From contig NIVC01000717.1 of assembly GCA_002269645.1 (NCBI GenBank), positions 248,001-312,000 on the forward strand: DNA of 64,000 bases, written 5' to 3'. Each line of letters opens with the position of its first letter. Within the stretch, counting starts at the first letter, position 1. Shown here piece after piece: positions 10,185-14,223 of the stretch. The stretch comes from Macrostomum lignano. Taxonomy: Eukaryota. Made by a program: the position numbers and the translations under genes. The notes beneath the pieces were generated by a model. The model saw only the letters and a program-made list of their open reading frames with translations. It was not told where the DNA came from and did no database searches.

Positions 10185-13100
10185 ATGGCGGCAAATTCGG
10201 ATGAGGTAAATACATCGGCAGTAATTACTGATTTGTGCAACAAGGTAGGAAAGTAACAAGGTAGGAAGTTGTATATAACATCAGGATAAGTTTTGCCACT
10301 ACTCCTCCTCCTTCTCCTCCACCTACTACTACTACTACTACTACTACTACTACTACTACTACTACTACTACTACTACTACTACTACTACTACTACTACTA
10401 CTACTACTACTACTACTACTACTACTACTACTACTACTACTACTACTACTACTACTACTACTACTACTACTACTACTACTACTACTACTACTACTACTAC
10501 TACTACTACTACTACTACTACTACTACTACTACTACTACTACTACTACTACTACTACTACTACTACTACTACTACTACTACTACTACTACTACTACTACT
10601 ACTACTACTACTACTACTACTACTACTACTACTTCTACTACTACTACTACTACTACTACTACTACTACTACTACTACTACTACTACTACTACTACTACTA
10701 CTACTAGTACTACTACTACTACTACTACTACTACTACTACTACTACTACTACTACTACTACTACTACTACTACTACTACTACTACTACTACTACTACTAC
10801 TACTACTACTACTACTACTACTACTACTACTACTACTACTACTACTAGTACTACTACTACTACTACTACTACTACTACTACTACTACTACTACTACTACT
10901 ACTACTACTACTATTGTCATAATAGCTATATGTTGTATATTTAAGGGAAAACTCGCATATTATTCTCGTTTCAAACCTGATTTATAAAAACAATGTAATT
11001 ACTACTATATCATAAATCAAAACATCTGTTTACATGTGAATTATTTTAAACAACCGAATTACAGGACATTAAGATCCGGTGCAAGCTGCATGTCCTTGCG
11101 AGATTAAAACGACTTCACGCAGATGATGGAGATGAAAGGGACAGAAAAGTTTTTATTGAGGTTGACAACAATTCAGTAAAGGAAAATCAAATGATCTGCT
11201 TCGCATTAGAAGAAAACTTTGCTAAATGGTGCACGTCTGAACCTACAAAGCACAAGCCTTTAAATGTCAACTTCTTACTATCCAGGGAGGAAGCGAATAA
11301 ATCGAAAAAAAAGAATAAAGGTGACAGTGAGTTTGAAAAGGTCACTTTTAGAATGTATGAAAAGAATGACCAAACGTTGCTACCAAAGGGCCAATTCAAG
11401 CCTAAGTTCATGCACATCACCGAGTTCATCCTCTACATTCATGAAGAGAAGGACGAAATTGTTTGTACTCCTGTGCTACCTGCGAGACTGCTGATCAGCT
11501 GCACCTCTGAATCTCTGAGCTCTTATCCTCTGGAAATCACTAAAAAACCAGTGACTAGTTCTTTTGGCGGTGTAAAGCGCTTGAACGCAGAATTTCTTCT
11601 CCGAGTTGACCGAAGTTCATCACAGCTCAAGACATTCGACGGTGAAGATCTTTGCATCGAAATTAACGGAATTAAATATTCACTAAGCCTAAAGGTTCGA
11701 AGCTTTGAGCTGTTTCGGCACTACTATATATTTCATCTCCAAATCAACTCTGCGAACCGAACGCACGAGGTAAAGCCTGTGGCTCGAATTGAACTCAACT
11801 TCACTGTCACTACTACGGCCCCACTTGGAGGAAATGAGGAACTTTATCTTGTTGCTAGCTGGCTCGAACAAAAATCGAACGCAATAAAGATGAAAACCAG
11901 TAAACAAAGAAACCCAGCTGTGGGACAGACTCAGCCTAAACATAAGCTTACATGTAGCACGTGCACTTTTGTTACCTTGCCGGAGAAAAGTGGCATTCTG
12001 AAAACTCTGACGAATGAGTTTCTTGCGTTTAAGCTCGAAAAGCGAGAAAAGAATTCGAAGGATACGGTGGGACAATATGAGAAACAGCTGACTCTAGCAG
12101 CAGGTATTGAGCCGGGCATCCTTACCTACGATATTAACATGGAAGAACTCAATGCTAATCCAACTGTGATGCCCTACATGACGACCTATCAGTTGCCGAG
12201 AGAGCAAATATTGCAATATTTTCACTCGCTGCTTCAGAATGTAGCCGGTCTCAAATACTCACTCAAAGATGTGAAAACGAAGTACGCCCAGCGCCTGGTT
12301 CCTCAGGTGAGGCTTGACGGTGGCTACGACATGCGCTATCATGCTAGTCGGCCCTATGAGATACACGATATCTGGAAACTTGAAGAGATTGTAGAGGTCA
12401 GCGCAATCGAATACTGCAGTCAGCTGGGCCTGAAACCTGAATATGCTGAAGAAACAACTAAAGAGATTCGCAGCGACGTGATTGGTTTTCTGACGAGTGC
12501 GTACAAAGAGCGGGAAAATGAGGTCTTTGAAGATCTTAGACAGATGTTGCGTGACTTTAAGTTTCAGCCAAAAGAGAAAGGCCTGCCAACTAATGAAGAA
12601 AGTAAAGGATACTTCCAGGCAATCATCAAAGCCGGAAAGTCTGTCTCAGCCAAACGCTCAGAAATCGGTGACGAAATTATTGATTTGATGATGCAGAAAG
12701 CGGCAGCCATTGTCCGCGGTCGTCTGGAGGCTTTCCTGGTGAGCCCCGAGTTCAACAGGCTGACCAGCAAGCACTATGGCGCGTTCCGATCGCACTTAGA
12801 TGCTGCTGGCGTGTGGTTTGCTTTTTTGATGCTGCTGCACGACGGAAGCTGCAAAACATTCTTGGAGAGAATTACTGAGAAAAGTTTACAAACGACGGAT
12901 CAGCAACTAAATCTTCCGCTTGTCGAAGACTTCGACGTCGATCTAAATGGCATTCCGCTGAAAATGGACCACATGCCCAGAGACGGCATTCTGTGGTATT
13001 TCTATTCTGTGCTGAACGGACAATTCAGCGACAAGGTGCCGGAGCAGTTTCGAACATTTGCCGCAATCAAGAAAACTTTTGCCAAGCCGTTAGTGCCAAA

Positions 13101-14223
13101 AATAACTATTGAAGGTGAATATGACGGACGTTGGAAGCGTGATGAGTCATTGGAAAAGATGATTTGGGGTGAGAATAATGCGAACCCGTCATGCGCACTG
13201 CAACGCGACGACCAATCGGATTCATTCAAAAAGCTGAAGGAATTTTTCGAACAAAAAGAAGACGAGATCTATAAACTGACAGAACAGCCACAGGCACAGG
13301 ACATAAACGATCCTGAAACGCTAAAAAAGCTGCTTAATAAGCTTGCTGAAAAAGCAACTGCTCTAAGCTATTTTGAAGTCCGTCTGAAGGCCATAGTGCG
13401 AGGCCGCTGCGAATCGCTACTTGTCAATCCACAACTGAGCCATCATGACGAGAAAAGCGAGGGTGTTTGGAAGAAGGAGATCCGCACAATCGGTCTTTGG
13501 TTTTCTTTTTACGTGTTCTGCTACGCAAAGAACGGAGCAAAGCGCTACAAACCACGAACAATTCCAGTTGAGAAATTATCTTTACACTTCAATAAAATAC
13601 TTGATGAACTAAATTATGGCAGCGTAAACGTATTAGTTCGGAAGTTTCATAAGTCGCTGGTGCCCAAAACAACCAAAGATGGTAAATACCATCGAGGATT
13701 TACAGCAAAATATAATGCAAGACAGTGGTACAAAATTCACGACATTTGGGGAGCCAATGGTGTCAAGGTCGGAAACGATTCTTTCGAAGAATGTGCTCTT
13801 GAATTTGAGCAGGACCGGACAGCTTATAATCAGCTGAAAAAAAGGTTTGACGAACGATCTCAACTCGTTTGGGATATTGTTAGAAGAAGCGAAGACCCGC
13901 AGCAGATAAATCTGGACCAGTTACTCAGTCGACTGTCTGAGTTGTCCGCCACAACTTTATCGAAAGAAAAGTACAAACTGCTGATGGAAAACTCTGCCGC
14001 CATTGTGAGAGGCCGGGTGGAATCTCTGTTGGTAAATCCGGAGTTGCAGAACCCATCTGACGGAAACTATCAAAACAATTGGGACAAAGAAATCGTTTGG
14101 ATTGGATCTTGGTACCGCTTCCTCATAACCGTTTGGTACAAATTCCACGGCAGCCTGTCAACAAGTGGCTTATTTTACAGCGACATCACTGAGCCGGGAA
14201 GACCGAAAAGATTTCGCTGGTAG
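10185..14223 (+). CDS. Orphan ~1059-aa protein with divergent C2-like N-terminal modules and three copies of an unrecognised helical domain; model join(10185..10205,11065..14223)
   Basis: The 1010-aa ORF 11191..14223 stays open upstream to a phase-0 acceptor TTACAG|GAC at 11064/11065. A matching phase-0 mini-exon gagcATG GCG GCA AAT TCG GAT GAG|GTAAAT lies at 10185-10205. AATAAA is at 14261-14266. AIVRGRxE motifs occur at nt 12706, 13390 and 13999. The long exon is well supported; the first exon and the C2 call are inference. Confidence 0.75.
10323..10914. repeat. (CTA)n microsatellite, ~195 units, in the predicted intron 1 of the orphan gene
   Basis: It is a near-perfect run with three point interruptions. 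Confidence 0.98.

Follow-up and report, generated by a model that had tools for sequence, protein, structure and literature searches.

The stretch of DNA examined here (hereafter the window) comprises 64,000 nucleotides of the Macrostomum lignano contig NIVC01000717.1 (positions 248,001 to 312,000, forward strand) and contains, on its plus strand, an intact two-exon gene of this flatworm or of a very close relative. The protein product carries three copies of a helical domain that, judged by sequence comparison, represents a real and undescribed family whose members are already present in databases under the name "hypothetical protein". The window is collinear and syntenic with contig NIVC01000465.1 (L001), with a flank identity of 93–98%. 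An earlier note on this DNA had described an open reading frame (ORF) of 1010 amino acids (aa) in a single 3.16-kb exon; the ORF, which starts with ATG, is present at 11191–14223 (+), as are the N-terminal strings quoted from it, but the frame is open further upstream to position 11065, directly behind a ttacag acceptor, and the single exon gives way to two. Exon 1 has only seven codons, ATGGCGGCAAATTCGGATGAG (ATG and six further codons, MAANSDE; 10185–10205, +), and a gtaaat donor comes next at 10206; within the 200 bp around exon 1, identity to the corresponding region of the annotated M. lignano sister gene BOX15_Mlig023762g1 (P0001), which has the same splice structure, is 99.5%. Intron 1 (10206–11064, +; 859 nt, phase 0) ends in ttacag, an acceptor conserved in L001, and the coding sequence (CDS) of exon 2 (11065–14223, +; 1052 codons and a TAG stop) was defined by its frame and by 73–74% protein identity to P0001. 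The spliced product, joining both exons, is 1059 aa long. Intron 1 harbors a (CTA)197 microsatellite at 10323–10913 (591 bp, 98% purity), which gives rise to spurious poly-Leu and poly-Val ORFs at 10225–10922, and a candidate polyadenylation signal, AATAAA, identified by consensus only, is positioned 38 nt past the stop codon (14261–14266, +).

The three repeats were first recognized by their motifs, each of which was found exactly at the residue given in the earlier note (numbering of the 1010-aa ORF): LVPQVRLDGGY, LVPKITIEGEY and LVPKTTKDGKY begin at residues 369, 634 and 823, AIVRGR occurs at 506, 734 and 937, HDIW at 392 and 850, and EKMIW at 655. BLASTP comparison between the segments yielded E-values of 1e-15 (R1–R2), 7e-15 (R1–R3) and 2e-20 (R2–R3), with 24–32% identity across 180–220 aa, so that the proposed homology of the repeats is borne out far beyond chance; the N-terminal third showed no BLASTP match to any of the three (E>0.03). 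On this sequence evidence the triplication is real and old. The unit itself proved longer than the ~180 aa originally suggested, since the alignment covers ~200–230 aa and starts ~40 aa ahead of LVP, at a conserved P-x-x-x-x-x-P-R-E/D cap that may also be read as P...(L/M/I)P(R/V)(E/D).

The first copy (R1; 12166–12858, +), delimited by alignment and by the match to its own profile (domain independent E-value, 2e-92), has its LVP from position 12295 and IVRGRLE at 12709–12729, and keeps the HD pair and a second His. It is separated from the second copy by the linker TFLERITEKSLQ (12859–12945, +), read from the sequence, which may resemble the C-terminal tail motif of the family, F-x-D/E-x-I-x-E, and from which a stretch of 15 aa is deleted in P0001. 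The second copy (R2; 12946–13545, +), delimited by alignment and profile, has its LVP from 13090 and IVRGRCE at 13393–13413, and has lost all three semi-conserved His positions. The third copy, delimited in the same way, extends together with the family C-terminal tail, LFYSDITEPGRPKRFRW, from 13546 to 14220 (+), with LVP from 13657 and IVRGRVE at 14002–14022; it is not present in the sister gene on L001. In a neighbor-joining tree, R2 and R3 grouped together with 96% bootstrap support and the position of R1 was not resolved. By these sequence relationships, the domain of the window gene was triplicated by internal duplication, R2 and R3 being sister copies.

The family was defined with a profile of R1, R2 and R3 (alignment A1), searched against 1.84 billion representative proteins. 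No more than 11 gave a match, none of them bacterial or viral, with the paralogues at E-values of 3e-32 to 5e-4: P0001; six further M. lignano proteins, namely P0002, P0003 (BOX15_Mlig010431g1), P0004 (BOX15_Mlig026577g1), P0006 (BOX15_Mlig011641g1), P0007 (BOX15_Mlig034522g1) and P0009 (BOX15_Mlig031750g1); P0005; and three unnamed proteins, P0008 from a Logan assembly and P0010 and P0011 from ENA. P0005 (4007 aa) was set aside because its gene model is chimeric and mistranslated, the sole real part being equal to P0004. A word-indexed homologue search retrieved P0001 alone with the full-length query, P0008 and P0011 alone with a 14-copy profile, and nothing with the N-terminal third; this search missed known relatives (P0001 and the M. 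lignano paralogues), and its negatives alone are not trustworthy. A metagenome scan with P0011 gave no match. The sequences constitute a small multi-gene family that is expanded in Macrostomum.

An alignment of 14 domain copies (A2) shows an overall identity of only ~23%, within which the P of LVP, the G, V-R-G-R-x-E and the W are invariant (14/14 copies) and the Y of G-x-Y (I in P0009), the I, the L-V and the F are nearly so. The domain is thus a unit of ~200–250 aa with a P..LPR(D/E) cap, an LVP-x5-G-x-Y hairpin, a helix ending in I-V-R-G-R-x-E-x-x-L-V, and a W-F helix; LVP-x5-G-x-Y, I-V-R-G-R-x-E-x-x-L-V and W-[FY] are found in all three repeats of the window protein. The earlier suggestion that R-G-R-x-E, W and H-D are invariant holds family-wide for the first two; H-D is missing from R2, P0008 and P0011, and R2 and R3 have lost two more His positions that the single-copy paralogues conserve, in Y-H and in the H-x-E ahead of the W-F helix. 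P0003, P0004, P0006, P0007 and P0009, which form a clade with 100% bootstrap support, share with the window protein the helical domain, LVP..G.Y, AAIVRGRxE..LV, WF and the tail F.D.I.E...P.FYRW, and differ from it in having one C-terminal domain copy instead of three and in keeping the three semi-conserved His. The tail, which follows the last copy, can be written in general form as F-x-D/E-x-I-x-E...P-x-F-[YFR]-[RKT]-W.

Multiplication of the domain is seen once more, in P0002 (1848 aa; L005 1001–6547), which contains near-identical tandem copies at aa 420–618 and 660–861 and a third, C-terminal copy that is very divergent (AAAIARGRAEALML); the sequences indicate that this multiplication is independent of that in the window gene. 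At the other extreme, the environmental relatives (P0008, on a 1.6-kb Logan contig from SRR23264968, L002 158–1309; P0010; and P0011) consist of 383 aa with one CBM20-like module and one helical domain, without the HDIW motif and without the FYRW tail, and may represent the minimal architecture of the family.

The domain corresponds to no described family in the collections searched. Pfam searches with the whole protein, with each segment and with all 14 copies gave no match above noise, PDB sequences gave none in single-sequence or profile searches, and NCBIfam contained no match for the domain. DUF5884 (PF19231) was the only Pfam model to touch a repeat (R1, ORF aa 359–431), and was rejected because it scored 15.5 bits with the whole protein and 13.4 bits with R1 alone against a cut-off of 27.5 (E=0.02–0.09) and matched one of the 14 copies; like it, the library matches to SpoVIF, CM_2, DUF7553 and O-ClC were all at chance level. 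Readings as an HD domain, a terpene synthase, a GAP-type Arg finger, a lysozyme-like domain or a Bcl-2/colicin-like domain were dropped for want of a profile or fold match. An AlphaFold2 model of R3, built from the 14-copy alignment, is all-alpha, with a mean predicted local distance difference test score (pLDDT) of 74.7 and a predicted template-modeling score of 0.79. In this fold, two helices at the N-terminus and the LVP..G.Y hairpin precede four long helices, of which the third is closed by IVRGRxE and the fourth contains the W-F stretch; the sequence alignment implies the same helices in R1 and R2. Foldseek comparison of this model with the PDB and BFVD, by a method that is weak on helical bundles, gave best E-values of 0.82 (PDB) and 0.72 (BFVD), with all TM-scores below 0.35. 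The earlier description of an unrecognized helical domain therefore stands, and its choice of this protein as the best candidate for a new domain family in the window was judged right.

The N-terminal region preceding the repeats (~367 aa; 11065–12165, +) is of a different kind. An AlphaFold2 model based on two sequences contains ~20 strands, and this beta-rich region is probably made up of about three beta-sandwich modules, of a class that was not assigned, as far as a model with a mean pLDDT of 37.8 indicates. In most paralogues, the single domain copy ends the protein and stands behind arrays of beta-sandwich modules with CBM20 scores, CBM20 being a carbohydrate-binding module (CBM) of the starch- or glycogen-binding type. 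The Pfam profile CBM_20 (PF00686; gathering cut-off 23.3 bits) matched P0007 at 37.8 bits (E=1.6e-9) and P0004 at 24.0 bits, with P0008 below the cut-off at 22.1 bits, and jackhmmer revealed that the CBM20-like module is repeated in P0002, P0004, P0006 and P0007; P0003 showed weak matches only and P0009 none. A profile of the paralogue modules had as its top match in the PDB the CBM20 of a maltotetraohydrolase, which was non-significant (E=0.66). The window protein differs from P0004, P0006 and P0007, whose N-terminal beta modules are recognizably CBM20-like: it has no match to Pfam CBM_20, and no link between its N-terminus and the paralogue modules was detected by phmmer, by a custom hidden Markov model of the module preceding the helical domain, by jackhmmer or in two hhalign runs (probability <1%). 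Its N-terminal region occupies the position held by CBM20-like arrays in the paralogues.

Taken together, these observations are best explained, in our judgment with moderate confidence, by an intact gene of a family that carries an undescribed domain and acts as a non-catalytic binding or scaffold adaptor. The identity and architecture in this explanation are very probably correct; the adaptor mechanism, which leans on analogy, is put forward tentatively. According to this proposal, the window protein, soluble and probably cytosolic as judged from its sequence, would dock on a target through its beta-sandwich array, the target of the CBM20-bearing paralogues being alpha-glucan or glycogen, and the helical domain would serve as a non-catalytic folding or binding module that binds or recruits a partner or self-associates. 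The i/i+4 Arg–Glu pair and the invariant Gly would be features of helix packing or of a ligand clamp, and the window protein would be trivalent, offering three such helical-domain sites. The domain probably serves in binding or assembly and not as an enzyme, because the only strictly invariant polar residues are the i/i+4 Arg–Glu pair, a second Arg and the Gly at the helix end, and because R2, R3 and other copies can dispense with the His positions, which might have hinted at metal chemistry, and no enzyme family or fold was matched.

In metazoans, STBD1 (genethonin-1), laforin and GPCPD1 are CBM20 proteins in which this module is joined to another domain with an effector or anchoring role (PF00686 architectures). 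The paralogues resemble them in pairing a CBM20-type module with a second domain in what would be a cytosolic protein, and it is this likeness that suggests, by analogy, a glycogen adaptor of the STBD1 type. The partner domain of the present family, in contrast, is unrelated to a phosphatase, a GDPD or a membrane anchor, and the window protein itself lacks a detectable CBM20.

Several points weigh against this interpretation. Its functional part leans on the architecture of the paralogues, and the N-terminus of the window protein has no CBM20 signal; the CBM20 matches of the paralogues span only about half of the Pfam profile; the strict invariance of R-G-R-x-E is equally expected of an active site; the structural novelty depends on one AlphaFold2 model (14 sequences) and on Foldseek with its weakness on helical bundles; and a ratio of nonsynonymous to synonymous divergence (dN/dS) of ~0.6, together with the loss of R3 in the sister gene, fits decay of one or both copies. 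A contig look-up for expression with the exact product gave no match; the gene identifiers of the family were likewise not found in the supplements of three M. lignano transcriptome papers or in full texts. A more far-reaching version, in which the AIVRGR domain is a new fold and functional class that forms the effector half of flatworm-specific, glycogen- or glycan-associated CBM20-array proteins, and in which the window gene is a triple-effector derivative with a beta-sandwich head and a number of domains that diversify rapidly between subgenomes under sexual or other antagonistic selection and not by simple decay, is regarded as doubtful.

The invariant residues can also be read as those of an enzyme. 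CBMs are typically appended to catalytic domains in CAZy architectures, and the helical domain could accordingly be a new catalytic domain, metal-dependent through the three His or acting through Arg and Glu, that the CBM20-like modules carry to alpha-glucan or glycogen, with R1 perhaps active and R2 and R3 degenerate pseudo-enzymes. In its favor are the retention of V-R-G-R-x-E, P, G and W in all 14 copies, with a near-invariant Y, at an identity of only ~23%, the conservation of HD, Y-H and H-x-E in the single-copy P0003, P0004, P0006, P0007 and P0009, and the fusion to CBM20-like modules in the paralogues. R2 and R3, though, have lost the His residues, and P0002, P0008 and P0011 some of them, with the fold motifs kept; no signature of an HD domain, of nucleotide binding or of a glycoside hydrolase accompanies the failure to match an enzyme family or fold; and the R-x-x-x-E spacing along a helix, with its invariant Gly, is explained at least equally well by a structural role in packing or in a salt bridge. 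A catalytic role is therefore considered unlikely, and the non-catalytic adaptor is retained as the preferred interpretation.

The comparison of the window with L001 bears on whether the gene is maintained. M. lignano is a neopolyploid whose assembly holds mostly three paralogous copies, and paralogue divergence averages 1.1% in CDSs and 2.2% overall across the genome (PMC10733133). The best interpretation of the window and L001 is that they are two of these paralogous copies or divergent haplotypes. P0001 (899 aa; PAA..., A0A267 series), the product of the L001 copy and annotated as a hypothetical protein, is the closest relative in the databases: a syntenic sister with the same exon–intron structure and 74% protein identity over the N-terminal region, R1 and R2. 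It differs in lacking repeat 3 and the C-terminal tail. Through a deletion of ~750 bp (L001 13263–13384, syntenic to window 13533–14341), the gene has lost its stop codon and AATAAA along with most of R3, so that the protein reads into the flank, and the L001 copy also carries a Thr-rich, low-complexity insert of the (ACN)n type and other in-frame indels. The L001 copy is thus probably degenerating, and the window copy is the complete one.

Mismatch-only divergence between the two CDSs amounts to ~9.7% (240 of 2469 shared CDS positions), or ~9 times the genome-wide CDS average. It is unevenly distributed: the N-terminal beta region is the most divergent part, with 6.5–21% mismatches and a synonymous divergence (dS) of 0.23–0.30, compared with 3.5–5% and 0.057 for R1 and 3–13% and 0.107 for R2. 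The dN/dS ratio is 0.62 overall and 0.36–0.95 in individual regions, with a significant excess of synonymous changes (Fisher p=4e-4), and all indels between the window copy and P0001 keep the frame. These sequence data suggest that the window gene is evolving unusually fast between genome copies under weak purifying selection.

As a separate observation, the dS of the N-terminal region (window 11001–12200 vs 12201–12800; L001 10700–13400) is 4–5 times that of R1 and of the flanks (2–7%); this excess could be due to conversion by a third gene copy, to haplotypes of old age or to a hot spot of mutation.

A lineage-specific ORF that is in decay or has no function, present as a redundant copy since the recent whole-genome duplication and with the repeats as relics, would account for the regional dN/dS of 0.6–0.95, for the ninefold divergence and for the loss of R3, the original stop and the AATAAA and the gain of the Thr-rich insert in the sister; the GC content at third codon positions (GC3) is also low, with no sign of codon bias. 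Such an ORF is harder to reconcile with a frame of 1052 codons, which cannot survive by chance, with the in-frame nature of the indels and the synonymous excess, and with the presence of the family-invariant residues in all three repeats: because these residues are intact at a mutual identity of only 24–32%, the repeats appear to have been long maintained. The raised pairwise dN/dS may, moreover, stem mostly from the truncated L001 copy alone. Decay of the window gene is therefore rated as a little less plausible than a catalytic role, and a functional adaptor gene remains preferred.

The earlier note had further proposed a membrane-targeted protein with C2-style modules in its N-terminal third. 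The beta-like character of this part is retained in the AlphaFold2 model; its assignment to C2 is not, given that hmmscan of residues 1–367 returned no Pfam family, C2 (PF00168) included, at E≤10. Foldseek comparison of the N-terminal model gave a non-significant mixture of complement MG, Ig, FN3, arrestin/VPS26 and tandem-C2 folds, in which the tandem C2 of E-Syt2 ranked fourth (E=0.03) and synaptotagmin-1 was also included. Synaptotagmin and E-Syt, as C2 proteins, do resemble the window protein in having a region rich in beta sandwiches ahead of other domains, and differ from it in that there is no sequence match and the structural hint comes from an unreliable model. Membrane targeting itself was not supported: the most hydrophobic 19-residue segment reaches 1.24 on the Kyte–Doolittle scale (usual threshold, ~1.6) and lies in the W-F helix of R1, and neither a transmembrane segment nor a signal peptide was found in the 1059-aa product, whose N-terminus, MAANSDEDIKIR, is polar and not signal-peptide-like. 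Lipid-binding C2 modules ahead of the helical repeats would agree with a beta-rich N-terminus and with the C2 structures among the Foldseek matches, yet these matches are not meaningful for a model of pLDDT 37.8 and occur among Ig, FN3, MG and arrestin folds, no transmembrane or amphipathic anchor signal accompanies them, and the equivalent position in the paralogues holds CBM20-like modules, not C2, which makes this proposal very improbable.

A gene that looks more AT-rich than its neighbors had been taken in the earlier note to raise retroposition or horizontal acquisition. The claim of AT-richness holds in part: GC3 is 0.48 in the window gene as against 0.64–0.68 in the neighboring coding ORFs (three G protein-coupled receptors, GPCRs, and a ribosomal protein S8e ORF), whereas the GC content of the CDS as a whole (0.443) equals the window mean (0.445). 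The GC3 of the paralogues is 0.47–0.55, the CDSs of P0004, P0006 and P0007 are single-exon, and all four paralogue CDSs that were checked consist of a single exon of up to 5.5 kb. Because the paralogues share the low GC3 and the single-exon CDSs, intron poverty and AT-richer codons are traits of the family and not marks of a recent insertion. No Pfam match to a reverse transcriptase, integrase, transposase, gag or protease domain was found in the window protein, so that it contains no recognizable transposable-element (TE) domain, and no prokaryotic or viral homologue was found among the 1.84 billion representative proteins, NCBIfam or the IMG/VR viral contigs. Scans of GTDB genomes and JGI metagenomes with back-translated AIVRGRxExxLV returned two sets of loci (82 and 42), all of which proved to be chance matches on re-scoring (≤20 bits). 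A processed retrogene was rejected in view of the conserved 859-nt intron within the CDS; no intron-bearing parent is known, and no search was made for a poly(A) remnant or for target-site duplications.

A retroelement remnant is present nearby, as indicated by an ORF at 7116–7775 (+) that matches RVT_1 (E=2e-19) ~2.4 kb upstream of exon 1; this ORF, separate from the gene, gave the sole RVT_1 match in the neighborhood. It lies within a GC-rich block at ~6000–10000 that is also found in L001 at 93–98% identity, and the block therefore predates the split of the two copies. Arrival of the gene or family by horizontal transfer, by retroposition or as TE cargo, which the concentration of nearly all coding sequence in one 3.16-kb exon, the single-exon paralogues, the low GC3 and this reverse-transcriptase fragment could be taken to favor, is highly improbable in the face of the intron after codon 7 that is conserved in the sister copy, the synteny of the locus between paralogous genome blocks, the membership of the gene in a multi-gene family of the same genome, the restriction of the protein, viral-contig and motif searches to chance matches, the lack of TE domains, the match of CDS GC to the local genome average, and the neighboring single-ORF GPCR genes, by which a gene poor in introns is seen to be nothing exceptional here.

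The novelty is that of a domain of unknown function, not of a new biological principle, and the family is tiny and almost confined to one flatworm genus in current databases. If the interpretation is correct, a new protein family is to be registered, and the CBM20-type modules of animals gain a new partner domain, which could hint at an unknown side of glycogen handling in flatworms. The gene would also be a clear case, in the recently triplicated genome of M. lignano, of divergence at ~9 times the CDS average with whole domain copies gained or lost between subgenomes. M. lignano is amenable to transgenesis and RNA interference, so that the function of the gene is directly testable.

The surroundings of the gene are rich in tandem repeats. 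A 36-bp satellite of ~80 copies (96% matches) extends directly 3′ of the gene from 14814 to 17680 and generates spurious ORFs of ~1000 aa on both strands; the syntenic site in L001 matches the 36-bp unit over ~117 bp only (about three copies), and the array has therefore expanded in, or been lost from, one of the two copies. A (CTCTAGC)n array of ~5.8 kb (51861–57699, ~797 copies) accounts for the strongly negative skew, in GC as well as in AT, at 52–58 kb, and other large arrays are found at 5118–5802 (32 bp), 23052–24120 (50 bp) and 26080–28485 (31/93 bp). A Pfam "Pentapeptide repeat" match at 26875–27429 (+) was rejected as an artefact of the translated 31/93-bp array and does not represent a gene. 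The three GPCR-like genes, each a single ORF with a GC3 of ~0.64, are located at 709–1779 (−), 45861–46661 (−) and 61228–62022 (−); two are of the 7tm_1 type (one at E=5e-15, and that at 45861–46661 with 29.8 bits against a gathering score of 30.5) and one is Srv-like. An uninterrupted ORF of 196 aa at 30732–31322 (−), flanked by a (TCTA)n array at 30363–30733, matches ribosomal protein S8e (E=2e-37; GC3, 0.675) and, to judge from its sequence, could be either a functional gene without introns or a processed copy.

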